Positions 21,850-63,618 of a stretch of 64,000 bases of DNA are shown here, in pieces (positions within the stretch are counted from its first letter, which is position 1; each line of letters starts with the position of its first letter). Made by a program: the position numbers and the translations under genes. The DNA lies in the sequence record PV764601.1. One strand, 5' to 3'. The notes under the pieces are model-generated. The model did not search any database. It had not been told where the DNA came from and was given only the letters and a program-made list of their open reading frames with translations.

Positions 21850-21925
21850 TGGCGGACAAGGCAGGGGTCGAACCTGCGACGGCCGGATTAACAGTCCGGT
21901 GCTCTACCAGCTGAGCTACATGTCC
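21850..21925 (-). tRNA. trnN: tRNA-Asn (GTT), 76 nt, encoded CCA
   Basis: GGACATG TAGCTCAGCTGGTAGAGC A CCGGA CTGTTAA TCCGG CCGTC GCAGG TTCGACC CCTGC CTTGTCC G CCA: full cloverleaf with one U-U mismatch in the acceptor stem. Confidence 0.95.
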
Positions 21926-49286: not shown

Positions 49287-49605
49287 CCATCCCGACTACT
49301 CCATCTGGCTCCTCGCTAGAGCAACCGAAGAAGGCGTCTGTAGGGCTCTATCCTTGGCAGAGAGCGGCGGTGGAACGGATGTGCTCGGAGAGTTCGATGA
49401 CCTCGATTCTGAGCATGCCGACGAAGGGGACGACCTCACGCCAGCCGAGCAATCCACTCGACGATGGCGCGCAATAGCCAACACCCTTGAACAGAAGTTC
49501 AAGACTAAGCACGGCTGTCACTACACGGAAATGATTACTCGCCTGTGCGACAAGTGGGGAATGGAAGCTCCCTATCGCTATCTCGGATTTGTAGGCATCA
49601 AGTGA
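49258..49605 (+). CDS. Hypothetical protein
   Basis: Start MKLQVQIPHD; overlaps neighbours. Confidence 0.5.
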   Translation: MKLQVQIPHDHPDYSIWLLARATEEGVCRALSLAESGGGTDVLGEFDDLDSEHADEGDDLTPAEQSTRRWRAIANTLEQKFKTKHGCHYTEMITRLCDKWGMEAPYRYLGFVGIK

Positions 49606-49916
49606 AGAAGCTCTTTGACGTTCCTTCGGGACCAAGGGTATACAACAAGCGACGGGGAAACGCACCCGAAGGTGCTGTCTACATAGGTAGGCCGTCTGAG
49701 TGGGGCAATCCCTTCGGCAGTAAAGATGGCACACAAGCTAAGTTCCGTGTGTCCTCGCGTCATGAGGCGATTCAGGCATTCAAGGAATGGGTGCTCGCTG
49801 ATCCGAACATGGTGCGCAAAATCAAGCAGCGATTGAAAGGCAAGGACTTGGTATGCTGGTGCGCACCTGCTCCTTGCCACGGTCACGTATTACTCAAGAT
49901 AGCCAACGAGGACTAA
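49602..49916 (+). CDS. DUF4326-domain protein
   Basis: VYIGRPSEWGNPF..LKGKDLVCWCAPAPCHGHVL signature. Confidence 0.9.
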   Translation: MKKLFDVPSGPRVYNKRRGNAPEGAVYIGRPSEWGNPFGSKDGTQAKFRVSSRHEAIQAFKEWVLADPNMVRKIKQRLKGKDLVCWCAPAPCHGHVLLKIANED

Positions 49917-49917
49917 G

Positions 49918-50223
49918 ATGGAAGTGCCATTGTTTGACGTAGAGAATAAAGGCGCGTCTACGGATCGCGTCAAAGAAAAGCTCCAGTCTATGGGTGTGGC
50001 ACGCTTCCACGCCACGGCAGTGCATGGCGCTGATCCTGTAAAGGTAGAGCGTGAACTGCTAATGTCGTTTGATCGCATGGAGCATCGTGCGGTTTATCGG
50101 CATTTGAGCAAGCACGATCCACTGGTCCATCGTCTGTGGTGGCCTGTGGTTGATTTCTTCCGAAATCTCAAGTACGACCTTTTCCGTCGCCGCAAGTTCC
50201 TGAGAACTCTGGACCAGCAATGA
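49918..50223 (+). CDS. Hypothetical protein
   Basis: Co-oriented, tightly packed. Confidence 0.55.
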   Translation: MEVPLFDVENKGASTDRVKEKLQSMGVARFHATAVHGADPVKVERELLMSFDRMEHRAVYRHLSKHDPLVHRLWWPVVDFFRNLKYDLFRRRKFLRTLDQQ

Positions 50224-50519
50224 AGAAGCAATCGGGCTTTACTCTGATCGAACTCATCATCGTAGTCGCAGTGATCGCCCTCTTGGCGATCTTCTTCCTA
50301 GGAGGTCCGCTGAAAACGCGAGCCTTCGGGCAGGGCAAGATGGTGGAGGCTCTGCACGCGCAGGGCTACACTGACGTTGAATACCTCGGTTATTCATGGC
50401 TAGGTTGCTCTGATGGCGACACCTTCCGCGCCAAGTTCCGCGCTACGTCCCCTCAAGGTGCCAAGGTAGAAGGCATAGCGTGTTCCGGTTTCATCAAAGG
50501 CACCACAATCCGCTGGTAA
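50220..50519 (+). CDS. Prepilin-type N-terminal cleavage/methylation protein (type IV pilin-like)
   Basis: MKKQSG|FTLIELIIVVAVIALLA class III signal with Glu5; two C-terminal Cys. Confidence 0.9.
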   Translation: MKKQSGFTLIELIIVVAVIALLAIFFLGGPLKTRAFGQGKMVEALHAQGYTDVEYLGYSWLGCSDGDTFRAKFRATSPQGAKVEGIACSGFIKGTTIRW

Positions 50520-50550
50520 CAGCTACTAACCACAAGGAAACGTTTCATCT

Positions 50551-52017
50551 ATGGGAATCATCGTCATCGGTATCGCAGTGCTCGTCATCCTTGCACTGCT
50601 TGCGATCATTTGCCTTTGGGCATTCGGTCGCCGCACTGTTGTCCCCACCAACGAAGTACACATTGTCCAGCAAGCCAAGGCTACCGTCAGCTACGGCAAG
50701 GACAAGGATGCAGGTAACGTCTATTACAAGTGGCCGGAATGGTTCCCGCGCATCGGTATGACTCGCCGCATCCTGCCGACTACCATGTTCAGCGTTCGCC
50801 TGAACGACTACGAGGCATACGATAAGGATCGGACTCCGTTCCGCATCGAAGTGGAAGCCTTCTTCCAGATCGCTGATTCGGACGTGGCGGCACAGAGCGT
50901 TGAGAACTTTGAGGAACTGACCTCCCAGCTGGAATCCATTGTCAAGGGTGCAGCGCGTTCGATGCTGGCGACCTACGACATTAACGAAATCATGACCGAG
51001 CGCAGCACGTTCGGTAAGGCTTTCACTGAGGACGTGCAACAGCAGCTTCCGGCGTGGGGTGTCAAGAGCGTCAAGTCCATCGAGTTGATGGATATTAAGG
51101 ACGCGCCGGGTCAGGAAGTCATTGCCAACATCATGGCAAAGAAGATTTCTCAGATCGAATCCGAAAGCCGTACTGAGGTCGCACGCAACCTGCGCACTGC
51201 TTCGCTGGTGGAAATCGAAGCCCAGCAGGAAGTGGAAATGCGTCGTCAGGAATCGGAAGAGACGATTGGTAAGCGCACCGCTGAGAAGGAAAAGACTGTT
51301 GGTATCGCTCGGGAGCGCACCCAGCAGGAAGTCTCGCAGGAAGCTGCGATCACCAAGACCCGCGAAATGGAAGTACGCAAGGTTGAGGAAGTGCGTGGCG
51401 CTGACATTCGCCGTGAAGTGAGTGTGGTCAAGGCAGAGGAAGATCGTCAGACCTCGGTCATCAACGCCGAAGCACAGCAGAAGACGGCCCTGATCGCCGC
51501 AACTGCGCAGAAGGAGTCGCAGGTTATTCGGGCAGAAGGTAACAAGCGTCAGATCGAGCTTGAGGCCGATGCAGCACTGACTCAGGCGCAGCGTGAGGCT
51601 GAGGGTATTCAGGCCCGAGGTGAAGCTGAGGCGGCGGCCGAGACTGCACGCTTGCGTGCCCCGGTCACCACTCAGATCGAACTGGCCAAGGAAATCGGTG
51701 AGAACCAAGGCTATCAGACGTACCTCCTGAGCGTGGAAAGCATCAACGCCACCAAGGAAGTCGGTATCGCTCAGGCCAAGGCTCTGGAAGGCGCAAGCGT
51801 CAAGGTCATCGCCAACACTGGAACCCCGACCGAAGGCATCAACAAGGTCTCCGGTCTGTTCGGCGCTGCGGGTGGCCTGAACATGGGCGCGATGGTTGAA
51901 AGCTTTGCCAACACCCCAGCGGGTGCTGCTGTCCTGAACCGTCTCGGTGTCAAGACGGAGGACGACACTACCCCGCCGTCCTCAAAGTCTCCGGATATTA
52001 TCCCTGACGAATACTAA
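50551..52017 (+). CDS. SPFH/flotillin-family membrane scaffold protein
   Basis: N-terminal TM, band-7 domain, AEA-rich flotillin coiled-coil. Confidence 0.9.
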   Translation: MGIIVIGIAVLVILALLAIICLWAFGRRTVVPTNEVHIVQQAKATVSYGKDKDAGNVYYKWPEWFPRIGMTRRILPTTMFSVRLNDYEAYDKDRTPFRIEVEAFFQIADSDVAAQSVENFEELTSQLESIVKGAARSMLATYDINEIMTERSTFGKAFTEDVQQQLPAWGVKSVKSIELMDIKDAPGQEVIANIMAKKISQIESESRTEVARNLRTASLVEIEAQQEVEMRRQESEETIGKRTAEKEKTVGIARERTQQEVSQEAAITKTREMEVRKVEEVRGADIRREVSVVKAEEDRQTSVINAEAQQKTALIAATAQKESQVIRAEGNKRQIELEADAALTQAQREAEGIQARGEAEAAAETARLRAPVTTQIELAKEIGENQGYQTYLLSVESINATKEVGIAQAKALEGASVKVIANTGTPTEGINKVSGLFGAAGGLNMGAMVESFANTPAGAAVLNRLGVKTEDDTTPPSSKSPDIIPDEY

Positions 52018-52057
52018 GTAACCCATAGGGCGCAGCAATGCGCCCTCACCATTCGGA

Positions 52058-52666
52058 GTGTTTGTGTCGTCCCCTACCTCGACCAAGAAAGTATTTAACG
52101 GGGTTGAAGCAACGTGCCTCAACTGTGAGAAGGCTACAGTGGATTGTTCTCCGATCCCTGCAAACGGAATCATGGAATGGAGTTGCCCTGTGTGTGGCCA
52201 TGACTACACCTTGCGTCTCTCCAACAACAAGGCGCAAATCGTAGCAACCGGAATACAGCGGATCAATGTGTTGGTCATGTTCAAGATCGACCGTGGCTCC
52301 GAAGACCCCATGTATATCGTCACTCGAAATCAGCTGGCTGCACGCACTGGCCATGAGCGCGACGAAATGCTGGAAGAGATTCGCAAGCTGCATTCCCTCC
52401 ACTACGGCCCCGAGAGTTGTATCAGTCAGGCCGCTGGCTTGGTAACGCTGGTCGGGGACGACACTCATCCGCACCACCTGTTTACCTACGTTGATTCCAT
52501 CATCGAGCCTACCCGAGAAGAGTATGCTGCGCTAATGGGCATGACGCAGGAAGACATGGACGAGATTGATCCAGAATACTTTGACCCATTCATTCTGGAT
52601 GGCCCTGTTCTACGCCGCCTATTCAAGCTAGACGGTAACACCACAAGCAAGAAGCATCTACACTAA
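52058..52666 (+). CDS. Zn-ribbon-containing hypothetical protein
   Basis: CLNC...CPVC; start uncertain. Confidence 0.55.
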   Translation: MFVSSPTSTKKVFNGVEATCLNCEKATVDCSPIPANGIMEWSCPVCGHDYTLRLSNNKAQIVATGIQRINVLVMFKIDRGSEDPMYIVTRNQLAARTGHERDEMLEEIRKLHSLHYGPESCISQAAGLVTLVGDDTHPHHLFTYVDSIIEPTREEYAALMGMTQEDMDEIDPEYFDPFILDGPVLRRLFKLDGNTTSKKHLH

Positions 52667-52676
52667 AGGAGTAAGC

Positions 52677-52952
52677 GTGAATCTGTATCCGTTCAAGTTC
52701 AAGTTGGGTGACGAGGTTGAAGTGATTACGACCCCGGTGCCTGCGTGTCTTCGTGAGGGCTGGGAGGAAGGCGCAGAGTCGATGATTTCCACCCGGAGCG
52801 GAAAAGTGGTGGCGCTGGAACTGTCGGCCAAGGGCACGACCGCAAGCATTGAATCCAACAAGAACGGGGAGCGCAAGCTCTTCCGCGAATTGGAAGGCAA
52901 CCTGCGCCCCAAGGGTTCGGGCCGACGCCTTGTGTTCGCGGGTCGTTCCTGA
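52677..52952 (+). CDS. Hypothetical protein
   Basis: AAGGAG RBS, GTG start; FKLGDEVEV SH3-like start. Confidence 0.6.
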   Translation: MNLYPFKFKLGDEVEVITTPVPACLREGWEEGAESMISTRSGKVVALELSAKGTTASIESNKNGERKLFRELEGNLRPKGSGRRLVFAGRS

Positions 52953-52961
52953 GAACACACG

Positions 52962-52990
52962 AAAGGGGTGGCCTAACGGCTGCCCCTTTT
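52962..52990 (+). terminator. Rho-independent terminator upstream of the modification operon
   Basis: aaaggggtggcc-taac-ggctgcccc followed by TTTT. Confidence 0.8.
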
Positions 52991-53038
52991 GCGTTTCCCG
53001 ATCCTGTAAATATAGACTGTATCCTCAAGGAGATTCCA

Positions 53039-53761
53039 ATGTCGGAACAAACTGTGATTGTGTTCAAGCCTGCCCACCTAGTCTATGCAGCTATTGAGGC
53101 TGGCCTCGGACCGATGCACTACATGCAGGCCCTCGTAAAGATTGAGCCCATGCTGAAAAGTATCGGTGTGGAAATCAAGATGGAGGAGGTGGACGGCGGT
53201 GCACAGGGAGACCGTGAGGTCAATCAACTTGTAGACGCCATCAATGAGTACAAGGCAGATCAGCTGGCTAGGGCCGAGGCTGCCAAGGTTCCCTTTACCT
53301 GCGAGGAAATCTACGCCATCGAAAACTTCGATAAGGTTGAGCCGGCCATTTACGCTCTGCGTGGCTTCTACTTCAACCATCTAAAGGGTGGCCTAGACGT
53401 AGAACTCAGCGACTTCGATATGGAGGCGCTTCACAAAGACACCGAGATTGAAGTGCGCGTCATCAAGGAATTCTTCTTCGATCCGCGCCGCTTCTGGAGG
53501 CTGGCTTCCGTGTGGTTCAAGGGCGAGCCTGTCATGGTCATTCAGAACGCCGGGCGCGAAGGTGACGACCACGCCAAGCGGTTCATCACGAATCGGGAAG
53601 CATTCGATGCTCTCTGCAAGCACCTGAACAGTTTCATTCAGCGCACGCCTTGGGACTCTGCTTCCATCGAAACAGACACCGTTGACGAAACTGCACACCT
53701 CGGTATGACCCTCACTGAATTCTATGGAAATGAACTGAATGGACACTTCGAGCGATACTAA
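53039..53761 (+). CDS. Hypothetical phage protein
   Basis: AAGGAG RBS; WRLASVWFKGEPVMVIQNAGREGDDH motif. Confidence 0.7.
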   Translation: MSEQTVIVFKPAHLVYAAIEAGLGPMHYMQALVKIEPMLKSIGVEIKMEEVDGGAQGDREVNQLVDAINEYKADQLARAEAAKVPFTCEEIYAIENFDKVEPAIYALRGFYFNHLKGGLDVELSDFDMEALHKDTEIEVRVIKEFFFDPRRFWRLASVWFKGEPVMVIQNAGREGDDHAKRFITNREAFDALCKHLNSFIQRTPWDSASIETDTVDETAHLGMTLTEFYGNELNGHFERY

Positions 53762-54572
53762 GATTCCGTTCAAGCTGTACGACTTGAACGACGTTCGCCA
53801 CATCAATGCGGAGCACTTCCCGCTGGATGATGACGACTACTGCTGGACAGTAGAAATGACGCCGCACCTTCTGTACGGTTTGGCCGACAGGGCACAGGCG
53901 CACCCTATGGGGTTCGTTGGCACGGAGGACGAACCCGAATGGATTTGGGAAGTCAGCGGTCGCCGCGCCGTGCTGCCTGTTGGTGGCCTGCACGTTTCCA
54001 AGACTACCGAGCAGTTCATTCGCAAGCAGGGTTGGGGCTACCAACTGAACGTCGGCTTCGACAAGGTGATCCACCACTGCGCTACGATTGAGCGCCCGGA
54101 AGACAAGGAAGAAGATGCAGACGAATACACGCAATGGCTCGACACTCCTACCCAGCGTTCGTACAAGGCCCTGCACTATGGCAAGGAGCGCAAGGCATAC
54201 TCGGTCACCGTGCTTAATACACAAGGCGAAATCGTAGGCGGTCTGTTCGGTCTGAACTTCCCCACCTACATTAGCGTCGATAGCATGTTCTCCCTAACTC
54301 CGAACGCATCCAAGGCTGCAATGGTTGCGCTGGACTTGTGGGCCGGTCAGGCTGGTAAGCGCCTTGTCGATATGGAAACGTTTGCCCCACACCTCGGTGC
54401 CCTTGGCGCTATGGATATGGATGGCCTGCACTTCCGCGATTGGGTTGAGCGCATCAAGAAGGACGCCGCTGCGAATGCCTCTGGGTTCAACCTCCCTTTG
54501 TTTGATGGCATTCAGGCCCTTGACGCCACGCAAGTATTCAACCACGCACGTTACCTGAGAACGAAGAAATGA
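53739..54572 (+). CDS. aat: Leucyl/phenylalanyl-tRNA-protein transferase homolog
   Basis: RRAVL..LHVSK, FDKVIHHCA, EIVGGLFG, SMFS..NASKAA, LVD..HL.ALGA align with the Aat motifs. Confidence 0.9.
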   Translation: MDTSSDTKIPFKLYDLNDVRHINAEHFPLDDDDYCWTVEMTPHLLYGLADRAQAHPMGFVGTEDEPEWIWEVSGRRAVLPVGGLHVSKTTEQFIRKQGWGYQLNVGFDKVIHHCATIERPEDKEEDADEYTQWLDTPTQRSYKALHYGKERKAYSVTVLNTQGEIVGGLFGLNFPTYISVDSMFSLTPNASKAAMVALDLWAGQAGKRLVDMETFAPHLGALGAMDMDGLHFRDWVERIKKDAAANASGFNLPLFDGIQALDATQVFNHARYLRTKK

Positions 54573-56206
54573 ATTACGGACTGCGCGAGTTTCGCACTGA
54601 TCGGGTGTTCGGCGAGCAGCATGTTGTCGCACCCACCGCTGACGTTGTGAAGCTCATCCCGAAGGCAAAGTTTGAGCAGTATCTGCATCGGGTCAAAGCA
54701 CTTGATGGTGTGGGCATCTTTGGTGACTTGCTGCCCACCTACGATGAATACATTTCGGTACTGCTGGCAAACTTTGTGCATCAAAGCGTGCTGGTGGTTA
54801 CGAATGTGTATGACCTGAACACCGGGCAGATGGTAGGCCACACGATCCTGCACGATCTGTGGAACACCCGCGATCCTCTCAAGCAGGCCAAGTTTGACCT
54901 GTTCGGTGCGAGCTACTTTGAAGTCAGCGTCCCACCGGCGCTGCCAGAGTTTCTGGATGACGTGTTTGAGCAGCTGCCGCCGTGCATGATCGTCAACTAC
55001 TTCCCGATCTACCCGCGTGAGTATGGTTATCAGGATGACAAATCCTATGGACTCTACATCCCCGAGTCGATGGAAAGCTACGTTGCCTCCCTGTCGAAGA
55101 AGAATCGGGAGAACTATCGTGCGGTGATGCGACTGAACGAAGGCATTCGGGTGGAGCAGGTTAGCCTGCGCGACGTGATGAAGTCTGCTGACTTCCACAA
55201 GAACTACACCGCCAACCTTGAGCGGTGGACCTACACCTCGGATGATAACGTCACCAACATCATCCACATCAACAACATGCTGCATAACCTTGAGGACCGT
55301 AATGCACTGGTCCTCAATATCTATGACGCAGACAACCGCCTCATCTGCACCAACATCGGTGAAGTGCGTGGCGCTGTGTACGTGGACAAGCTGGCTGTGC
55401 CGGGTGTAAGCTACGAAGAGTACAAGAAGCGGCGCATCGGCTTCCTCGCCATCTACGAGGCGATCCGATTCATCGTGGAAGAACTGCCGTTCGACGTGAA
55501 GTATTACCACCTCGACACCGAGGGTACGTACAAGGAAAAGTTCATCCCGGTAGGCTTTGAACTGCCCATCGTTCCCCTCGACTACGCCGTGGTGGACTCG
55601 GACTTCTGCGCAGGCAACTACTGCGCTGAGTACGGCTTTGAACCTCCGGTATACATCCGTGGTAAGGGATGGGAGTTGAAGAAGCTGGACAGCAAGTGGA
55701 ACGATCAGATCGACGTGTCGGAGATCAAGCTGGCTGAATTCCTCAAGCTGACTTCTGAACTGTTCGGGGAAGATGACCTCAACACCTTCGACCTTGAGAC
55801 GATCAATCAGCTGTCGCATATCCTGATGACGGCGCGTGAGGGCGGAAGTGTTCGGATTCTTGTCGCAAGGTGGCGTTATCGGAACCCCATCGGCTACATT
55901 GTTTTCAACCAATTTAATCCGAACGCCTATATCGACCTTGTGTACGTCACTGAGCAGATGCGTGGCCACGGTGTCGGTAGGCAGATGATGCAAAAGGCGT
56001 TCGCGCTGCTGTCGAATGAATTTGACGGCGTTGCCCTGCACACTTCGGTTACCAACGACCCTGCCAAGCGCCTGTATCGTGCCCTCGGGTTTGAGCAGAG
56101 CCTGCCTGTCGTAGGCTACTACGATGACAAGACAGATTCGTTTGGTAATGACCTTGATAGCACGGACGCATTCTACTACTACAAGAGGTTGAAGCATGAA
56201 GATTGA
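54569..56206 (+). CDS. Two-domain GNAT protein (FemABX/Acetyltransf_6-like plus C-terminal classical GNAT)
   Basis: SMESYVASLSKKNRENYR; C-terminal LVYVTEQMRGHGVGRQMM..NDPAKRLYRALGF. Confidence 0.8.
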   Translation: MNYGLREFRTDRVFGEQHVVAPTADVVKLIPKAKFEQYLHRVKALDGVGIFGDLLPTYDEYISVLLANFVHQSVLVVTNVYDLNTGQMVGHTILHDLWNTRDPLKQAKFDLFGASYFEVSVPPALPEFLDDVFEQLPPCMIVNYFPIYPREYGYQDDKSYGLYIPESMESYVASLSKKNRENYRAVMRLNEGIRVEQVSLRDVMKSADFHKNYTANLERWTYTSDDNVTNIIHINNMLHNLEDRNALVLNIYDADNRLICTNIGEVRGAVYVDKLAVPGVSYEEYKKRRIGFLAIYEAIRFIVEELPFDVKYYHLDTEGTYKEKFIPVGFELPIVPLDYAVVDSDFCAGNYCAEYGFEPPVYIRGKGWELKKLDSKWNDQIDVSEIKLAEFLKLTSELFGEDDLNTFDLETINQLSHILMTAREGGSVRILVARWRYRNPIGYIVFNQFNPNAYIDLVYVTEQMRGHGVGRQMMQKAFALLSNEFDGVALHTSVTNDPAKRLYRALGFEQSLPVVGYYDDKTDSFGNDLDSTDAFYYYKRLKHED

Positions 56207-57071
56207 GATTCATTCCCAAACTGAGAACGACGCATCCTCGCAACTGAGTCCGAATTCCAAGAGCCTGCCTGAACTGGTCAACGCGCTGTCCTATCTGGCA
56301 TCGCTGGACGGCAACTACACGCTGCAAGGTGTGCCGAGTTCGTGGGCTCCACTGCTGACCTACCTGCGCTTCGCTATCGGCAGCACCACGGTCGAACTGC
56401 AAGGCGATGAGATTGTTGGTCCTGCATGGCAGGCAGCAGACTACGGCCGCAACATGACCGAAGTTGTGTTGGAAGCCATGTGTGCCATCCGCCCTGAAAC
56501 CTCCATCGTGCTGCGTCTGCTGGATTCGGAAACGCCCATCCCGCAGTCGCGCAGGGGCTACGAGTTCGCCGAGCCCGAGCACGATTTCGTGTCTAACCCT
56601 GTGATGGCAGAGCGTCGTGCCAAGGTCATCGGTATCGAAGCTGCTAGGGAACTGTACGCTCCCACGCGACCGCACGTGCTGGTTGTTCCAAATAATCCTG
56701 AAATCATCGAGTTGACTCAGAACCTCCTGACCCAACTCGGTATTCGTGACAAGTGGTATCTGCTGATCCTCGACGGCGCTGCTGGTATCGTGCCGGAAGA
56801 CCTGAGTAATCTGCTACCGGACCAGCATTACTCTGTGTGGGATGACACCTATAAACAAATGTGGAACATCCGAGACTACTTCTCGCGTACCTTCCACACT
56901 GCGGTGGTGTCTTACGTCAAGGGCGCACAGGTTACGGCAGTGGAATACGGCGTCAGCTACAGCACGTTCAGAGGCTCCCTGTTCCATGCGCGTACTGACC
57001 GCGACCTGACTCACCCCGAAAGTATTCTCAAGCTGCGCCATGCACTGCTAAATAACACCGCAAAGGAATAA
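56196..57071 (+). CDS. Hypothetical protein, possible DUF5591/ArcS-like C-terminal domain
   Basis: VLVVP...LLILDGAAGIVPEDL..LLP.QHY resembles the DUF5591 G-V-V-P-x-E-L...P...H-Y pattern (by-eye match only). Confidence 0.45.
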   Translation: MKIEIHSQTENDASSQLSPNSKSLPELVNALSYLASLDGNYTLQGVPSSWAPLLTYLRFAIGSTTVELQGDEIVGPAWQAADYGRNMTEVVLEAMCAIRPETSIVLRLLDSETPIPQSRRGYEFAEPEHDFVSNPVMAERRAKVIGIEAARELYAPTRPHVLVVPNNPEIIELTQNLLTQLGIRDKWYLLILDGAAGIVPEDLSNLLPDQHYSVWDDTYKQMWNIRDYFSRTFHTAVVSYVKGAQVTAVEYGVSYSTFRGSLFHARTDRDLTHPESILKLRHALLNNTAKE

Positions 57072-57073
57072 CC

Positions 57074-58117
57074 ATGCACGTAATGACTGCCGAGCATTAC
57101 ATTGAACGTTTCGGATGTTCAAATTCGATCTACCCTGAGCTAGATAAGGACGTGCAAGCACAGTGGGTAAAGCTCCGCAGAAAGCTTGCACCTTCCTATG
57201 CGGACAAGCCGCTGTACGTGAGCACGGACGGCTCAATCGCTGTTGAGTCTTACCCGGACGGAACCCTGTACGCAGGGTTCACCAACATGGGGATGGCAAC
57301 CGGCTTCATGTTAGGTACGGTCGATCAAATCAAGAACACCTTGATCGACCTGTCTCAATCCATCCCAACCTTTGAGCAGGATAATGCAGTTGTCGCACCT
57401 CCTGCCCTTGACTGCCCACATAGATACGGCGAAGACTTCCCCCGGGAAATCTACTCGCTCAAGTCAGACGTGGTGTATCTCGGGTATCGTGATCGCGCCG
57501 GAGTCATGACGTGGGATGAATATCTCACGTCCCTGTCCACTAAGCGTAGGGCACAAGTACGGCAGAAGCTGCGCGTATCCGAGCACCTCACGTTTGAGGT
57601 CGAGCCCTTGTTCGACTATGAGATTCCAGTCATCGCCGAGTGGATGCAGGAACATTGGAGTGCGCAGACAGCGGAGACGTGCTCGACGTGGCATCCGCTG
57701 GTAGTGGAAGGTTCGCTGTTACCGCTGGCAATGTCGGTGGCTGCTGGTTCAGGGTGCGATACCATCAAGGTTTACGATGGCTTGCGCCTTGTGGCAGTCG
57801 GTACGTTCGTGAAGCGCGTCAATCGTCGCGTCTTCGTTGGCTTCTTCAAGGACTCGACCTACGATGCTCCGAATGGGTTGGGTACTGCGGTGCTGGCGCA
57901 TGCTGTGCAGTATTACCTACAGCGGCCGGAGACGGGGACCGCCATCATTGATACCACATTGGCTGCTGACTTTGTGGAAGGGCACACCTACAGTCAGTAC
58001 AAGCGTCCCGTGTGTAATGACACGATGACGTATGCAGGTATCGCAATCTGTTCGGCCACCCCCAAAGAGAAAATGTGGCCTCCCTACTACCAAGCAGGAG
58101 CATGGGTTTATGAGTAA
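57074..58117 (+). CDS. FemABX/Acetyltransf_6-like GNAT protein
   Basis: TWDEYLTSLSTKRRAQVRQKLR, GLGTAVLAHAV, YSQYKR. Confidence 0.7.
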   Translation: MHVMTAEHYIERFGCSNSIYPELDKDVQAQWVKLRRKLAPSYADKPLYVSTDGSIAVESYPDGTLYAGFTNMGMATGFMLGTVDQIKNTLIDLSQSIPTFEQDNAVVAPPALDCPHRYGEDFPREIYSLKSDVVYLGYRDRAGVMTWDEYLTSLSTKRRAQVRQKLRVSEHLTFEVEPLFDYEIPVIAEWMQEHWSAQTAETCSTWHPLVVEGSLLPLAMSVAAGSGCDTIKVYDGLRLVAVGTFVKRVNRRVFVGFFKDSTYDAPNGLGTAVLAHAVQYYLQRPETGTAIIDTTLAADFVEGHTYSQYKRPVCNDTMTYAGIAICSATPKEKMWPPYYQAGAWVYE

Positions 58118-58904
58118 CGTTCGCGCAGCCTTCGAGAAGTACCGTGTATACCGCGAGGTTCTGGCGCGCAATAAGGGCCTACCCTTCAAGCCGGTCGCTG
58201 CACCGAATGGCTTTACCGTTGAGGAGGTCCATACCGAGGACGCAGGGGCCATCCTTGTTCCTATGGGCGACACTGAGTTCCCTGCCTTCTACGATGAGGT
58301 TCTGAACTTGTCGGACAATCTGGCGCACACGATGCGTCCAGAGGTTCGTGTTATTGCAAGCCGTCCCAGCTTTGAGGCGCACCTGCAATCGCTGTCGCAG
58401 TTGAAGCGCAGCTGGAAGAACACGGCCCACCTCATGTTCCATCCCGCGCGTGGTGGAGAGTTTGACCAGTTCAAGGCTGGACTCATCCACATCATCGTCT
58501 CGAACCTGCAACACTTCAATCCGGGCATGACGTTTGAAGGTGCGACAGAAACGGCGGTGGCATACCTTGAGTACATCGCTGCATGGTCGCTGATTCCCAA
58601 CAGTGACGTGGTGCTGGTTTTCCGTCCTAGCGAGGATGGCAAGTTCACCCCATGCGGCATTGGCATGTTCCAAATGTGCCCAGAGAACGATGAGTATCAC
58701 TGGGTCAACACGTTGCTCCTGCGTGACCAATACGCCAAGGAGTACACCATCGGGAACGTAATGCTCCTGCAAGCCCTGCGCCTGTGCTACAAGGCGAACG
58801 TGCTGTATCTCAACCTCGGCCTCGCCGTCTTCGACTACAAGAAGACGTGGAAGCCCATTCCTTTTGAGCGCAAGGTTCCGGTCTTGCTCGACCCCACGGA
58901 GTAA
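58110..58904 (+). CDS. FemABX/Acetyltransf_6-like GNAT protein
   Basis: ATG 58110 after AGGAG; SFEAHLQSLSQLKR, IGNVMLLQAL..YLNLGLAVFDYKKTW. Confidence 0.75.
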   Translation: MSNVRAAFEKYRVYREVLARNKGLPFKPVAAPNGFTVEEVHTEDAGAILVPMGDTEFPAFYDEVLNLSDNLAHTMRPEVRVIASRPSFEAHLQSLSQLKRSWKNTAHLMFHPARGGEFDQFKAGLIHIIVSNLQHFNPGMTFEGATETAVAYLEYIAAWSLIPNSDVVLVFRPSEDGKFTPCGIGMFQMCPENDEYHWVNTLLLRDQYAKEYTIGNVMLLQALRLCYKANVLYLNLGLAVFDYKKTWKPIPFERKVPVLLDPTE

Positions 58905-58909
58905 CCCAC

Positions 58910-60433
58910 ATGTGTTCCATTTTCGGTGTCCATAACCTGCGTTGGTCTGACGCACAGCAGAAGCGCGTCGTCTTCAACGCACTGATGACGCTGGCTGTTG
59001 AAAGTTGCGAGCGTGGCCGTGATGCAATGGGCTACGCTGCCTTCATCACGTCGCTTGATGGCACCACGCATCGCGTGTTCCAGCGTCAGTCTTTCCGTTC
59101 GATTCGGGATACTCATCCTGACCTCAATGCACGTGCACTGGCTGTAATCAGTCAGGTGCAGATCATGATGCGCAACCTCGACGCCATGACTCCGAACGAG
59201 GTGAGAAGTTTCACCCTGATCGCAAACTGCCGAGCCGAGCCGACTACTGAATGGCTACAGGACCAGCGCGAGGATGACATTCAGCCCTACGCCAACTGGC
59301 CCTCTGAACGCTATTTCGCTGTGCATAACGGCGTCATCGCCAACGATGCGCAATTCATCCCGGAACATTCCCGCACCAAGGTGGATAGCGCTGCGATTCC
59401 CTACGCGATTGAGCGTGGTGAGTTTGAAAGCCTGATCGGTTCTGTTGCGTCAGCGGTCTACGACGTGGAGACTGATACGCTGTGGCTCGCCCGCAACTAT
59501 CGGCCCCTCTCCGCTGTGTGCCCTAGCTTTGGCTTCCATGAAAACGGCGCTGCGGTAGTATTCGCCAGTGAGCGGCAGGCCATTACGCGTGCACTGTTTC
59601 GTGACGGCATGTATACCGATTACCCAATCGCCGCCAACTCGACTTGGAAGTTCAACGGCCACATCGACCGGAACTCTTTCTTCGTAGGCAAGGCGGCAAC
59701 CACTCGCTTCGACAAGGACCCGAACGGCGGCAACCCTGAGAGCGCCATCGTGATCCTGTCCGGTGGTATGGACAGCACGGTTAGTGCAGAAATCGCATGC
59801 CGGGATCACACCAACATCGTGCTCGCTCACTTCCATTATGGTTGCCGGGCACAGACGCGCGAGACGGAGGCAGTGACGGCTATTCATGCTGCACTGGTTG
59901 AGCGTCATCCTCGGAAGACGATCACCCTCAAGTTCTTCGACCTCGACTTCCTCAAGCAGCTGGGTGGCAACCCGCTGGTGGACGACACGATGGAAGTGGC
60001 AACCGGCAAGGACGGCATCGAGTACGCGAATGAATGGGTGCCGTTCCGTAATGGCCTGATGGTCGCCATGATGGCAGCGTATGCTGATCGGTGGAGCTTC
60101 GGTGCAATCTACACCGGCGCCAATCTTGAAGAAGCAGGTGCTTTCGGGGACAATGAAAAGGAATTCTTCGACCTGATGGAGAAGGCAATCGCCATTGGCT
60201 CCAAGGCCGCTCCGAAGTTGGTCAACCCTCTGGACAAGCTGATGAAGCATGAGGTGGCACAGACGGGTCTGATGCTGGAAGCGCCAATTCACCTTAGCTG
60301 GAGTTGCTACCACGGCGGTGAGCTTCATTGCGGAAACTGTGGGCCATGCCAGCTGAGGCGAACCGCGTTTGCCATGATTGGTAAGGACGATCCTGTAAAG
60401 TATATGCAGGACGCGCCGCTAGTAGGACTGTGA
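58910..60433 (+). CDS. queC: Gat-QueC: class II glutamine amidotransferase fused to 7-cyano-7-deazaguanine synthase-like domain
   Basis: N-terminal MCSIFG, RGRD, NCRAEPT, VHNGVIAN, VDS; PP-loop SGGMDS, VPFRN, SWSCY..HCGNCGPCQLR Zn motif. Confidence 0.9.
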   Translation: MCSIFGVHNLRWSDAQQKRVVFNALMTLAVESCERGRDAMGYAAFITSLDGTTHRVFQRQSFRSIRDTHPDLNARALAVISQVQIMMRNLDAMTPNEVRSFTLIANCRAEPTTEWLQDQREDDIQPYANWPSERYFAVHNGVIANDAQFIPEHSRTKVDSAAIPYAIERGEFESLIGSVASAVYDVETDTLWLARNYRPLSAVCPSFGFHENGAAVVFASERQAITRALFRDGMYTDYPIAANSTWKFNGHIDRNSFFVGKAATTRFDKDPNGGNPESAIVILSGGMDSTVSAEIACRDHTNIVLAHFHYGCRAQTRETEAVTAIHAALVERHPRKTITLKFFDLDFLKQLGGNPLVDDTMEVATGKDGIEYANEWVPFRNGLMVAMMAAYADRWSFGAIYTGANLEEAGAFGDNEKEFFDLMEKAIAIGSKAAPKLVNPLDKLMKHEVAQTGLMLEAPIHLSWSCYHGGELHCGNCGPCQLRRTAFAMIGKDDPVKYMQDAPLVGL

Positions 60434-61038
60434 TGAAAGCACTGATTGTAATGGCCCACCCGGATGACAGTTTCATTTTCGGCCACAACATCCGGCAGGC
60501 CACGCCTCATATCGAGTGGCACGATCTATGTGCCACTTACGGTCATCGCACTGCACGCGGCAAGGAATTCCTTGCCGCCTGTAAGGTGTTGAAATCGAGG
60601 GGTATCCAGCTTGCGTTGGACGACGATTACCAAGGCACGCTGACCGAGGACACTGCGCTGCTGGTGGAGAACATCTATCAGCAGTTGCACAATGGGTACA
60701 ACTACCTCGTAACGCACAACCCGAACGGTGAGTATGGCCACCGCCATCATCGGGAACTACACAAGCACACCATGCTCGCGTGGTCGATGCTGCCAGTCAA
60801 GGAGCGCCCATCCGTGCTGGTGCCTGCATTCAACTACAAGGTGCCGGACTTCACGCTCTACAGCGAAACCAAAGCCAAGAGCAAGTGCCTGCAAATCTAC
60901 GAGCGCGAAATGTATATGATCGGCAACTTCGATCTGATTGCAGAGTCGTTCGTGTTGCATGAAAAGGGAGAGCGCGGACCGTCGCTTCATGTTGAGGTAA
61001 CTCGCAGCCTCCACCACCGAAAGTTCAAAGAGGATTGA
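60433..61038 (+). CDS. PIG-L/LmbE-family deacetylase
   Basis: AHPDD and THNPNGEYGHRHH motifs; TGATG coupling. Confidence 0.9.
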   Translation: MKALIVMAHPDDSFIFGHNIRQATPHIEWHDLCATYGHRTARGKEFLAACKVLKSRGIQLALDDDYQGTLTEDTALLVENIYQQLHNGYNYLVTHNPNGEYGHRHHRELHKHTMLAWSMLPVKERPSVLVPAFNYKVPDFTLYSETKAKSKCLQIYEREMYMIGNFDLIAESFVLHEKGERGPSLHVEVTRSLHHRKFKED

Positions 61039-61040
61039 AA

Positions 61041-62144
61041 GTGAAGAAGATCATTGTAGTTCGCAGTCCTGAGTCGGACTTCCGCCCTGAGAAGTGGATC
61101 ACTAACAAGGTGATCGCCGCCCTCCGCCAAACCGCAGCAGACAAGACTCGGACCCTCAACGGTCATGAGTTTGAAGTCGTTGAGGTGAACAGCGGCGAAG
61201 AATTCAACAGCATGTCGTCGCAGTCCATGTTCTATTCCGACGAGACGATGACCAAATCGTTCTGCAAGGGTGTGCTGGGTGTGCTGGATCACATCGCTGA
61301 TGGCGACGTGGTTTACTTTGCCGATGGTTGGTCGCCTGCCGTTCCGGTGCTCAAGTTCCACATGCACTGCGCAGGCATCAAGGCCCACCTGACCGGCTTC
61401 TTCCATAGCAGCGTTGAGACTCCGGGTGACTTCCTGTATTCGGCAGGCTCGTGGGTACGCAGCCTCGAAGAAACCCTGCTGGATTGTTTCACCGAAACCT
61501 ACGTAGCTACCGATTATGGAGTGGACCTACTAAACTCCACCAACGTCAACGTCATTGGCCTGCCGGTCATTAGCCCACAAGATACCAACCCTGCGCAGCT
61601 GCGCCGTTCGCTGACTGCGCGTGCTGAAGAGGCAAAGCCTGTCGTGGGCTGGAGCCATCGTTGGGCAGAGGATAAGCGCCCCGAAGACTTCATCGAACTG
61701 GCCCATCGTCTTGGCGACACCCGCACCTTCCGCGTTCTGCACCCGGTTCCCCTCGACACCGCACCGCTGTATCAGGAAGCGGTGGATGCAGGTATTGAGT
61801 TCGTCCTATGTGATACCAAGGACAAGTATTGGACCGAGGTGGCGAAACTGAGTTTCCTGTTTAGCTCTGCAACGCTGGAGACTTTCGGTTACAGCGTTAT
61901 TGATGCAGTGGTCCTAGGCGCGATTCCGGTAGTGCCCAACCGCGCGTGCTACCCATACATGTACCGCGACGAGCACCTGTACTACACGCTGGAAGATGCA
62001 GCCCAACTCCTGAGTAAGGATTGGGTACGCCACACTCTGTTCGACGTGTTGAGGGCCCCAGTGTTCGTGCAGGTCAACGCATTTGAGCACACGATTACCA
62101 CTCGCCTGACTAAGTTGCTCGACAACGACCGCTACCCGAACTAA
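61041..62144 (+). CDS. GT-B glycosyltransferase (GT4-like)
   Basis: HRWAEDKRP and ETFGYSVIDAV..GAIPVVP..YP donor-binding motifs; GTG start after GAGGA (alternative TTG 61035). Confidence 0.9.
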   Translation: MKKIIVVRSPESDFRPEKWITNKVIAALRQTAADKTRTLNGHEFEVVEVNSGEEFNSMSSQSMFYSDETMTKSFCKGVLGVLDHIADGDVVYFADGWSPAVPVLKFHMHCAGIKAHLTGFFHSSVETPGDFLYSAGSWVRSLEETLLDCFTETYVATDYGVDLLNSTNVNVIGLPVISPQDTNPAQLRRSLTARAEEAKPVVGWSHRWAEDKRPEDFIELAHRLGDTRTFRVLHPVPLDTAPLYQEAVDAGIEFVLCDTKDKYWTEVAKLSFLFSSATLETFGYSVIDAVVLGAIPVVPNRACYPYMYRDEHLYYTLEDAAQLLSKDWVRHTLFDVLRAPVFVQVNAFEHTITTRLTKLLDNDRYPN

Positions 62145-62147
62145 GCA

Positions 62148-62996
62148 ATGGCTCGCATTGGAATTGTAGGGGGCCTTGGCGTGGGTAAAGCTCACGCCAT
62201 CGCTGCCTTGAATCTCGGACATACGCTGTCCTTTGTCGTAGACGTGGACCCCAAGGCTAGTGAAGTCTACAGCAGATCGGTGCTGGTTAATCAATGGGGT
62301 TCGTTCTATGAAGAAGCTGTGCTGGAGCGTCAGGTTCCAGTATACAAAACACTGACTGGCGCAATGATGAGTACGTGGAATGCTCCGGACCTCATTATCA
62401 TCGCCACGCCAGATAGCACTCATGACCTGTTAGTGAGGCAAGCGGTACAATGCTTCCCTGAGTCTCGCGTGCTGTGTGAGAAGCCGTATAAGTCAGACGT
62501 GATTGATGATCGTGTGCTTGTTTCCGCCGAATGGATTTACCATTCCAAGCTGGCAGGCGTGCACGACCCCATCACGGCGCTGGCTATGTACCACAACAAC
62601 ATGCCTACCGATGGTTCTCCGTGGAACCACGTAATCAAGTACGACCTAGGCTTCCACCTGATGAGCATCATCGGATGGCAGCGTGGCTTCGACGTGGCTG
62701 CAAAGGTAGATCATGCTGCAACCACTCCAGTAAATTGGGGTGGTGAAGTTCAAGTGCTAGGGTTCGATGATGTGATCGAAGTAGCCGCAATGTACAATCC
62801 GAATGCAGCAGGCGTAACAGAGTTGATAGGTGCGCCCCTGATAGAGGATGCGGAAATAATCGTCCGTCATGGCGATACCACTACGTACTTGGATTGGGAA
62901 GCCCCGTTGTTTGAACGGCAGATTTCCTCAGTCCTACGTGGCGTGCACCCGGTCACTAGCAAGGTGGCTGTGGGCATCGACTTCAAACTAGGCTGA
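62148..62996 (+). CDS. Gfo/Idh/MocA-family NAD(P)-dependent oxidoreductase
   Basis: RIGIVGGLGVGKAH, IATPDSTH, VLCEKP. Confidence 0.85.
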   Translation: MARIGIVGGLGVGKAHAIAALNLGHTLSFVVDVDPKASEVYSRSVLVNQWGSFYEEAVLERQVPVYKTLTGAMMSTWNAPDLIIIATPDSTHDLLVRQAVQCFPESRVLCEKPYKSDVIDDRVLVSAEWIYHSKLAGVHDPITALAMYHNNMPTDGSPWNHVIKYDLGFHLMSIIGWQRGFDVAAKVDHAATTPVNWGGEVQVLGFDDVIEVAAMYNPNAAGVTELIGAPLIEDAEIIVRHGDTTTYLDWEAPLFERQISSVLRGVHPVTSKVAVGIDFKLG

Positions 62997-63000
62997 ATTT

Positions 63001-63035
63001 AGGGGCTGCCGGGAGCGATCTTGGTGGCCCCTTTT
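63001..63035 (+). terminator. Terminator closing the operon
   Basis: aggggctgcc...ggtggcccc followed by TTTT. Confidence 0.7.
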
Positions 63036-63050
63036 CGTTTCCCGAATGGG

Positions 63051-63214
63051 TCGATTTTTTCAAAGGGTGCTCGAACTGAACCTGAACGGCAGCTGAACGG
63101 GAATCAGGGGTGGCCGCACACCGAGAAGATTTGTGCTATACTGTAGTTGTGAGAAAGTCTGCCTGTCGTCTAGAGCAGGCCAAACACACTTTGAAAATAA
63201 CGCACTCATCGGAG
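63051..63214 (+). promoter_or_regulatory. Promoter-leader cassette copy 2 (extended -10 TGcTATACT at 63134-63142)
   Basis: Direct repeat of 28697-28859. Confidence 0.8.
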
Positions 63215-63219
63215 CTAGC

Positions 63220-63618
63220 ATGTCCCTTAGCAATATTGTCATTCGCACCACCCGAGTCCTCGCTGAACCAACTGGCAAGAGCCGCACGGAAAAGCTGGCC
63301 GGCAAGCTTGGCAAGGTGCGCAAGCATAAGCGCGCATGGGTGGAACCGAGCGACGCAACCATGATCCTGCCGATGCACTTCAACGTGGTATCTCCCAAGC
63401 ACGGGATTCACTACGCAGAAATGTCGTTGGAGATTCCAATGGCGGGTGGGTTCGACTACTACACTGTGGTTCGGGGCGGTAAGACGCGACACGATGCGTT
63501 GCTCCTTGTCATCAAGGAGATTGAGAACTCGGAGTGGTTCCATATCTTCAAGAAGCAAGGCGTCTATTTCTATGTTACGGGCGGCGAAATGGAAAACCTG
63601 TACCGGGGTTACCTGTGA
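63220..63618 (+). CDS. Hypothetical early protein (132 aa)
   Basis: ATG after GGAG at the end of the cassette. Confidence 0.65.
   Translation: MSLSNIVIRTTRVLAEPTGKSRTEKLAGKLGKVRKHKRAWVEPSDATMILPMHFNVVSPKHGIHYAEMSLEIPMAGGFDYYTVVRGGKTRHDALLLVIKEIENSEWFHIFKKQGVYFYVTGGEMENLYRGYL

Follow-up and report, generated by a model that had tools for sequence, protein, structure and literature searches.

What do three FemX-like genes do in a jumbo phage, and on what would they act? The question is raised by a stretch of 64,000 nucleotides (nt), referred to here as the window, which matches with 100% identity the record PV764601.1 (227,648 bp) of Xanthomonas phage PhiXhv-12, a jumbo myophage infecting X. 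hortorum pv. vitians. Positions are given in window coordinates, that is, the PV764601.1 coordinate minus 62,000. The three genes, A, B and C, lie between positions 54569 and 58904. An earlier reading, made from the letters of the window alone (the sequence-only reading), took them for FemX-type enzymes in tandem that could add amino acids stepwise from aminoacyl-tRNA and then cap the product. The encoded proteins are paralogues, strongly diverged from one another, within the double-GNAT aminoacyl-transferase superfamily (FemX / MprF-C / Sbb17 type). The favoured role, a little short of an even chance, is that they aminoacylate a glycosylated 7-deazaguanine from tRNA, probably one in phage DNA, with an acetyl cap added afterwards, and not that they produce a free peptide.

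Three divergent paralogues

The genes concerned, and the gene located between A and B, are as follows.

54569..56206, plus strand: protein A, 545 amino acids (aa), with a FemX/Acetyltransf_6-like N-terminal part and a classical GNAT C-terminal part
54569..55738, plus strand: N-terminal part of protein A, about residues 1-390, assigned by its Acetyltransf_6 match and by hhalign to the B family
55739..56206, plus strand: C-terminal GNAT domain of protein A, residues ~400-545, assigned by its Acetyltransf_1 match
56196..57071, plus strand: protein X, 291 aa, ArcS-core (DUF5591)-like, assigned by weak family scores and by its orthologues
57074..58117, plus strand: protein B, 347 aa, double-GNAT, FemX / aminoacyl-phosphatidylglycerol (PG)-synthase-like, assigned by AlphaFold2 (AF2) model and Foldseek
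58110..58904, plus strand: protein C, 264 aa from the annotated start, a smaller FemX-like double-GNAT protein, assigned by AF2 model and Foldseek

The longest open reading frame (ORF) of C begins at 58032 (to 58904) and overlaps B by 86 nt. A start at 58110, as annotated in GenBank, is preferred because it reduces the overlap with B to 8 nt and agrees with the orthologue in contig L006.

Two short elements recur in all three ORFs, and both the coordinates and the motif positions of the sequence-only reading were borne out. The first is a helix at residues 167-180 of A (nt 55067-55108), 146-159 of B (nt 57509-57550) and 87-100 of C (nt 58368-58409). The second is a distal YK pair at residues 321-322 of A (nt 55529-55534), 309-310 of B (nt 57998-58003) and 243-244 of C (nt 58836-58841). 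When the 227,648-bp genome is translated in six frames and every ORF of 80 aa or more is considered, the helix pattern has three exact matches, one each in A, B and C; about 0.001 would be expected from composition, a figure that is descriptive only since the pattern was derived from these same sequences. The supposed tandem arrangement did not hold, as the unrelated gene X (56196-57071) separates A from B inside the span. Neither X nor the Leu/Phe-tRNA-protein (L/F) transferase homologue upstream of A had been mentioned.

Pairwise comparison barely registers the relationship. BLASTP aligned A with B at E 0.001, confined to the surroundings of the motif, and found no match between A and C or between B and C; two-sequence profiles detected no similarity among the three. 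Such nearly negative results are what would be expected if the motif were coincidental and the genes unrelated, and chance strings of this kind do occur. The top matches of the B-family profile among PDB sequences are neuroglobins with a near-identical helix string, so that the helix motif alone is not diagnostic. Coincidence is nevertheless hardly credible. With both BLASTP and two-sequence profiles too weak, the homology of A and B was recognised only with deeper profiles: hhalign of A against the B family gave 95.2% at E 2.7e-8 over 188 columns (A 161-373 to B 133-347). The separate fold predictions for B and C converge on one structural class, and the Arg of the helix motif and the distal Lys are invariant in both the B and the C families. 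In a search with the B-family hidden Markov model, A orthologues rank next after the B proteins. C is tied to A and B by fold and a weak profile match alone (E 2e-3 to the B-family profile, over a segment that includes the YKK motif). The three genes can thus stand as FemX-type paralogues, as had been proposed, with A linked to B by hhalign, B and C by fold, and C weakly by profile.

An exhaustive profile search with B orthologues recovered 22 representative clusters among 1.84 billion proteins. In the family alignment L154, R159, G270, Y309, K310, N315 and P337 of B are invariant, with the Y309-K310 pair kept in 21 sequences. The corresponding residues of the C family are R100, W198, G215, N216, N235, G237, K244 and W247 (K244 in seven sequences), and Y321-K322 of A is invariant in three orthologues.

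Known sequence families capture little of this. Residues 178-305 of A score 25.3 bits for Acetyltransf_6 (PF13480), above the threshold of 22. B and C have no match to that family, nor any match in Pfam, PHROGs or NCBIfam. Acetyltransf_6 is matched weakly by four of 21 B-family members (best E 0.0018), and FemAB_like is touched by two of the 21 (best E 0.044). None of A, B and C matches Pfam FemAB at E up to 0.1, and none has a significant LPG-synthase Pfam match. Searches of PDB sequences with B, C and X returned nothing meaningful, and the only proteins recovered by word-indexed searches, whether with B, A(1-390) or the C alignment, were orthologues.

Predicted folds and the proposed donor

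The AF2 model of B, built from 21 sequences, has a predicted local distance difference test score (pLDDT) of 89.5 and a predicted template modelling score (pTM) of 0.88. Searched with Foldseek against the PDB, 26 of its 27 best matches are aminoacyl-tRNA-dependent double-GNAT enzymes or DUF2156 homologues, the exception being 2hqy, which has no assigned function. The list is led by the aminoacyl-PG synthase/MprF structure 4v36 (5e-8) and FemX 1xf8 (9e-8), with Sbb17 9wqx at 8e-7; FemX matches as a group range from 9e-8 to 3e-7 over 330-370 columns. Acyl-coenzyme A (CoA) tandem GNATs appear from rank 28 (5e-6), and L/F-transferase at 2.5e-4. A fold search of BFVD with B returned no named relative. 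The model of C, from seven sequences, is of lower quality (pLDDT 69.5, pTM 0.73), with a core at residues 80-240 mostly above 70. Its top 23 matches in the PDB are all FemX, DUF2156/MprF, Sba18/Sbb17 or ATE1, with FemX 1xe4 the best (1.6e-6), followed by DUF2156 5vrv, Sba18 and ATE1. The comparison by Foldseek that had been proposed as a check on the sequence-only reading thus came out in its favour for B and C, with aminoacyl-tRNA-dependent enzymes ahead of acyl-CoA GNATs. A is linked to the double-GNAT fold through its second domain only, by hhalign to B.

Members of the superfamily are recognised by their two GNAT domains, the second of which bears a basic helix that binds tRNA, and by a Phe followed by the catalytic Lys; the aromatic-Lys pairs are F304-K305 in FemX and F328-K329 in DhpH-C (PMC12945691). 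As judged from sequence, A, B and C seem to conform to this description in their invariant Arg-rich helix and their aromatic-Lys pair.

The C-terminal domain of A belongs to a different class. It scores 54 bits for Acetyltransf_1 (PF00583) at residues 427-508 and contains a QxxGxG motif at residue 463, in agreement with the classical acyl-CoA GNAT domain first ascribed to A. Its best PDB sequence matches are N-alpha-acetyltransferases (Naa30, E 4.5e-6). In the modules of Vibrio phage GR7B and contig L012 the same domain is encoded as a stand-alone gene of 159-179 aa. It is a candidate capping N-acetyltransferase. The Q/RxxGxG/A CoA motif was not found in B, in C or in residues 1-390 of A.

An alternative is that A, B and C are acyl-CoA-dependent N-acyltransferases of the MshD, VipF or Acetyltransf_6 tandem-GNAT type which use no tRNA. 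Their substrate would be the deacetylated sugar or some other amine arising in the 7-deazaguanine pathway. A does exceed the threshold of Acetyltransf_6, a family annotated as acetyltransferase, and acyl-CoA tandem GNATs are among the Foldseek matches at 5e-6 to 4e-4. The set of glycosyltransferase, PIG-L and GNAT also resembles mycothiol synthesis, in which the tandem GNAT MshD uses acetyl-CoA. However, enzymes dependent on aminoacyl-tRNA outrank every acyl-CoA enzyme in both fold searches, and the CoA pyrophosphate-binding motif is present in the true GNAT domain of A and not in B or C. Each complete module already has a separate classical GNAT, and a homologue of the L/F-tRNA transferase is translationally coupled to A. 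The acyl-CoA alternative is therefore considered unlikely, although it is the most serious contender. Stepwise aminoacylation followed by an acetyl cap is a reasonable mechanism in view of the fold ranks of B and C, the homology of A and B and the confinement of the CoA motif to the GNAT domain of A.

The operon and its upstream transferase

The remaining features of the gene cluster are listed below.

53039..53761, plus strand: conserved protein, function not known, 240 aa (phrog_8664, E 2.5e-21); 23-nt overlap with the next gene
53739..54572, plus strand: L/F-tRNA-protein transferase homologue, 277 aa (Pfam Leu_Phe_trans); 4-nt overlap (ATGA) with A
58910..60433, plus strand: Gat-QueC, a glutamine amidotransferase-QueC fusion, 507 aa (Pfam QueC and GATase_7, phrog_10428)
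60430..61038, plus strand: PIG-L / LmbE-type de-N-acetylase, 202 aa (Pfam PIG-L 31.2 bits, cut-off 28.2)
61035..62144 (record start 61041), plus strand: putative glycosyltransferase, 369 aa, so named by its GenBank label only
62148..62996, plus strand: Gfo/Idh/MocA-type NAD(P) oxidoreductase, 282 aa, with which the gene series of the operon ends (Pfam GFO_IDH_MocA 38 bits)
63001..63032, plus strand: terminator-like hairpin at the end of the operon, with a 14-bp stem, eight G-C pairs and a T-rich tail

From 53739 to 62996 the genes are joined by gaps of 2-5 nt or overlaps of 4-11 nt. The hairpin begins 5 nt past the oxidoreductase stop and has the longest stem of the six terminator-like sites in 49500-63600, a number below the shuffle mean of 12.4. 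The whole gene order is kept in a Logan contig whose B is 75% identical. Orthologues of the 53039-53761 protein lie directly 5′ of the module in contigs L006 and L007, and this gene, upstream of the operon, may also be a member. A, B, C and the L/F-transferase homologue are inferred to form the amino-acid-adding part of a 9-10 gene operon for the elaboration of 7-deazaguanine.

The L/F-transferase homologue is a fourth member of the double-GNAT superfamily, located just outside the span originally singled out. It scores 102.6 bits (cut-off 22.7) for Pfam Leu_Phe_trans at E 2e-29 and matches the E. coli Aat structure 2z3k at E 2e-13. The DME triplet keeps D186, and Q188 is changed to E. The score against TIGR00667 is 77.5, under the equivalog cut-off of 143.55, and the protein is accordingly not regarded as an equivalog.

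Protein X has a more ambiguous ancestry. ArcS adds lysine to preQ0 (PMC11298593), and PC-x3-KPY is its signature (PMC10516641). The window protein scores 13.7 bits for DUF5591 (cut-off 26, E 0.056) and E 0.03 for the NCBIfam ArcS model, and PHROGs contain no match for it. Its orthologue in L007 reaches 24 bits (E 3.8e-5), that of GR7B also matches DUF5591 weakly, and jackhmmer unites all four X proteins (window, L006, L007 and GR7B). The signature is kept in the L007 and GR7B proteins and lost in the window and L006, in the window through a 6-residue deletion. X is thus probably, by its sequence, an ArcS-core homologue and not an active ArcS. Comparison of window 56196-57071 with L007:4308-5255 and L011:6371-7378 revealed a complementary pattern: the motif-less X goes with Gat-QueC, and an intact X with plain QueC plus a second QueC-like gene. 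This suggests a functional replacement, with X kept for a non-catalytic or altered role.

Of the sugar-type genes, the PIG-L protein also has a weak MshB match. The C-terminal segment of the putative glycosyltransferase, compared by eye, would resemble the EX7E region of GT-B enzymes. Its orthologue in contig L010 (46% identity) adjoins B-family genes, as does the L010 orthologue of the oxidoreductase, which lies beside the glycosyltransferase and B.

Two further genes were noted upstream of the operon. Window 50220-50519 (plus strand) encodes a protein of 99 aa that has the N-terminal methylation motif of type IV pilins (Pfam N_methyl, E 9e-9). The 488-aa product of window 50551-52017 (plus strand), hypothetical in the record, is a flotillin-like SPFH/Band 7 protein (Pfam Band_7, E 2e-19); it is anchored in the membrane, and a long part of it is charged and coiled.

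The region is also present in four near-identical phages. Two unannotated records, OQ603359.1 (Erwinia phage Ep032) and OQ603353.1 (Xanthomonas phage Ep026), are ~96.5% identical to the window and 100% identical in B; their host labels name different genera, Erwinia and Xanthomonas, despite this identity. PhiXhv-12 itself is a culturable isolate and a biocontrol candidate for lettuce leaf spot, and the paper on it makes no mention of the A/B/C operon genes.

7-Deazaguanine genes and the proposed nucleic acid target

Gat-QueC provides the link to 7-deazaguanine. It scores 168 bits for QueC and 35 bits for GATase_7, matches phrog_10428 at E 6e-84, and from end to end shares ~33% identity with the Gat-QueC of Nonagvirus and Seuratvirus, annotated as dPreQ0/archaeosine synthase. 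FolE, a QueD-like PTPS and QueE are encoded elsewhere in PhiXhv-12 among replication genes, and the neighbours of FolE and QueE are DNA polymerase and helicase genes. A query with the 9g-type DpdA found no DpdA1-type match in PhiXhv-12. A search for the zinc motif by regular expression located the following gene outside the window.

PV764601.1 216554-218260 (L005:26554-28260), minus strand: TGT-like protein, 567 aa, hypothetical in the record

It carries catalytic and zinc motifs, DSGGFQL and CTCPIC...HNL. Archaeosine TGT is its sole credible PDB match, over two collinear segments, and TGT its sole Pfam match. Judged by sequence, it is a likely, highly divergent DpdA. Homologues are encoded by GR7B, GR11A, nine P. 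putida jumbo phages, NCTB, BCSR5, Motura and Phosso (~60 residues only), and those of GR7B, GR11A and Motura are annotated as TGT.

Two other observations concern guanine chemistry in this phage. A 372-aa NADAR-domain protein (E 1e-13) is encoded at L005:19437-20555 (minus strand) beside QueD-like and MmcB-like genes; NADAR enzymes are linked to the removal of ADP-ribose, including from DNA guanine. The only tRNA gene in the window, and in the annotation of the record, is tRNA-Asn(GUU) at window 21850-21925 (minus strand). It is among the four tRNA species that normally bear queuosine at position 34.

That this tRNA is of the queuosine family bears on the view that the operon makes a free small molecule or a modified tRNA, and not modified DNA. 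The product would then be an aminoacyl-glycosyl 7-deazapurine nucleoside, similar to the peptidyl-nucleosides or streptothricin, or a hypermodified queuosine/archaeosine-like tRNA base. Queuosines bearing a sugar or an amino acid do occur in tRNA. The characterised FemX-type enzymes all use small-molecule, lipid or protein acceptors, and the TGT-like protein has an enzyme of tRNA as its best structural relative. Against this, FolE and QueE are embedded among DNA polymerase and helicase genes, the related modules of other phages adjoin ligase and topoisomerase genes, and the phage 7-deazaguanine pathways studied so far all modify DNA via DpdA (PMC10516641). A small-molecule or tRNA product is distinctly unlikely on this evidence, and DNA is preferred as the target.

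Related modules in other jumbo phages

The B family is present in 16 of 50,697 phage records, and all 16 contain a TGT-like gene. A scan of bacterial genomes (genome_contigs) found no B relative, and scans of viral_contigs, metagenome_contigs and genome_contigs added no further loci. Distant B relatives come from the exhaustive representative search and contig look-ups only. Relatives of B and C were found in few jumbo-phage groups only, with QueC, ArcS-like/DUF5591 and GNAT neighbours wherever enough flank was recovered.

The order of genes varies between these groups. Contig L007, in which A is 50% identical, has A, a methyltransferase-like gene, X, B, QueC, a second QueC-like gene and a C-like gene. 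Vibrio phage GR7B has a ligase, a DUF5591 protein, two QueC genes, a C-like gene, B and a 697-aa protein, followed by a lysine-2,3-aminomutase-like radical SAM enzyme and a small GNAT. The L012 module consists of QueC, a C-like gene, B and a GNAT. P. putida jumbo phages carry two QueC-like genes, a protein of the 697 family, B and the aminomutase. Contigs L009 and L010 have a C-like gene or two copies of B, with the aminomutase, and L010 also carries the orthologues of the window glycosyltransferase and oxidoreductase described above. C relatives were identified in L007, L009, L011 and L012. From the recurrence of QueC beside them, B and C are seen to belong to a recurrent phage module centred on QueC.

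The aminomutase-like enzyme is encoded at L009:5098-6300, L010:7472-8638, L011:13293-14441 and L015:14871-16106. The same modules also encode a conserved protein of 500-700 aa with no family match and methyltransferase-like proteins. None of these three kinds of protein is present in PhiXhv-12. Beta-lysine may be a building block in the modules that bear the aminomutase.

This company of genes also bears on whether the transferases have the classical jobs of their superfamily, unlinked to QueC: formation of host peptidoglycan cross-bridges, aminoacylation of membrane lipids or attachment of N-terminal degradation tags. The closest folds are indeed FemX, MprF and L/F-transferase. Yet no significant FemAB or LPG-synthase match was obtained for A, B or C in Pfam, no membrane domain is present, the genes are tightly coupled to Gat-QueC, and B and C accompany QueC and ArcS-like genes in distant phages. 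Such classical roles are very improbable. A peptidoglycan or lipid role was rejected for the lack of family-level sequence matches and membrane domains.

Proposed pathway

In the favoured reading, aminoacylation and capping would be late steps of a DNA modification pathway. FolE, QueD, QueE and Gat-QueC would, by homology, produce a base of the preQ0/ADG/G+ type, which the TGT-like DpdA candidate would insert into phage DNA. The putative glycosyltransferase would then add an N-acetyl-hexosamine, PIG-L would expose the amine, and the oxidoreductase would tailor the sugar, by analogy with mycothiol and streptothricin chemistry. The L/F-transferase homologue, the N-terminal part of A, B and C would take aminoacyl groups, one or several, from the aminoacyl-tRNA of the host, as the fold suggests for the FemX-like enzymes, and pass them to the sugar amine and to the growing chain. 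The sugar amine is suggested as acceptor by the precedent of Sbb17/Sba18 and Orf11 and by the mycothiol-like gene set. The acetyl-CoA GNAT domain of A would finally cap the terminal amine, as its family membership indicates. The outcome would be a bulky adduct in the major groove, shielding the phage DNA from host nucleases. Of the product first envisaged, the logic of aminoacylation and capping is reasonable and is retained; the free-standing peptide assembly line is not, given its setting of QueC, ArcS-like, deacetylase, glycosyltransferase and oxidoreductase genes. A free peptide as primary product was rejected on the QueC and ArcS-like context.

Several points weigh against this reading. 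What has been observed is family and fold assignments alone, and the donor, acceptor, order of reactions and number of residues are all deductions. The Foldseek TM-scores reach just 0.4-0.5, which places the assignment at the level of superfamily and architecture and not of a close relative, and the model of C has moderate quality. Tandem GNATs that use acyl-CoA (VipF, MAB_4324 and that of clavulanate) were matched as well, at E 1e-5 to 1e-4. In the hhalign alignment K310 of B pairs with A340 of A, not with K322. X lacks the ArcS motif. No QueF was seen in PhiXhv-12, so that the base itself would have no obvious primary amine. The TGT-like assignment combines its motifs with weak scores, E 0.016 for archaeosine TGT and E 0.07 for the Pfam family. 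The co-occurrence of B with a TGT-like gene may stem partly from common descent in one jumbo-phage clade, and the 16 of 16 figure is weakened to the extent that its carriers form such a clade. The L/F-transferase homologue is missing in L007 and in the recovered GR7B flank, and may therefore have another purpose. The glycosyltransferase has no sequence match in Pfam, PHROGs, NCBIfam or the PDB by which its GenBank label could be confirmed.

Comparison with known systems

FemX of Weissella viridescens and the FemABX enzymes share with the phage proteins the double-GNAT architecture and, as far as sequence indicates, an aromatic-Lys pair near the C-terminus and a basic helix opening GNAT domain 2, and FemX is the best structural match for C and among the best for B. 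As in FemABX, several paralogues could work in series. The phage proteins differ in their low identity (10-13%), the lack of a FemAB Pfam match and of any peptidoglycan context, the much shorter C (264 aa), and their location in a phage 7-deazaguanine operon. The aminoacyl-PG synthase domain of MprF (DUF2156), a tRNA-dependent aminoacyl transferase, has the same fold, is the top match of B and ranks high for C. The phage proteins differ from MprF in lacking a membrane or flippase domain and in having no association with lipids in their gene context.

A functional parallel may be drawn with Sbb17/Sba18, Orf11, PacB, VlmA and DhpH/DhpK. These soluble FemX-like enzymes transfer amino acids from aminoacyl-tRNA onto the amine of a natural product. 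Sbb17/Sba18 are streptothrisamine aminoacyl-tRNA peptide synthases, and for these and Orf11 the acceptor is an amino sugar, as proposed for the phage enzymes. Their pathways belong to actinomycete clusters that make free antibiotics, whereas the phage pathway is viral and tied to QueC and TGT-like genes. In mycothiol and bacillithiol synthesis a similar order of steps is found to that suggested here (glycosyltransferase, PIG-L, amino-acid transferases, acetyl-CoA GNAT), but ligation is ATP-dependent (MshC/BshC) and not FemX-like, and the acceptor and product are unrelated thiols.

The known phage 7-deazaguanine systems combine DpdA with FolE/QueD/QueE/QueC, Gat-QueC or ArcS2, and with DpdL/M/N. 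PhiXhv-12 resembles them in having FolE, QueD, QueE and Gat-QueC, along with an ArcS-core-like protein and a TGT-like enzyme. Their products are small (dPreQ0, dADG, dG+, dPreQ1 and its methyl/formyl forms, dDG and dCDG), and FemX-like, L/F-transferase-like, PIG-L and glycosyltransferase genes are present in none of them (PMC10516641). Glutamyl-, mannosyl- and galactosyl-queuosine are natural 7-deazaguanines with an amino acid or a sugar; they differ in being borne by tRNA, in being non-viral, and in being made by an aminoacyl-tRNA synthetase paralogue and unrelated glycosyltransferases. Amino-acid hypermodifications of phage thymidine are known, and their enzymes are quite different. No paper describing a FemX-like/QueC phage module was found in the library searched. 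The superfamily and the base pathway are both already known; their combination is new.

Significance for jumbo phages

A broader claim is that a clade of jumbo phages builds an acetyl-capped aminoacyl or short peptidyl chain, from host aminoacyl-tRNAs, on a sugar attached to a DNA 7-deazaguanine. This is a substantial possibility, though on balance doubtful. Within that clade PhiXhv-12 would be a variant with four transferases, Gat-QueC and the sugar branch.

If true, this would be the first case in which an amide bond is formed on a nucleic-acid base with tRNA and without the ribosome, and no larger hypermodification of guanine would be known. Functions would be given to the B and C families, which have no match in the family databases searched. 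The use of aminoacyl-tRNA outside translation would be joined to the anti-restriction DNA chemistry of phages, and a new, bulky adduct would be predicted in DNA that would matter for restriction, CRISPR and the behaviour of the DNA in sequencing.

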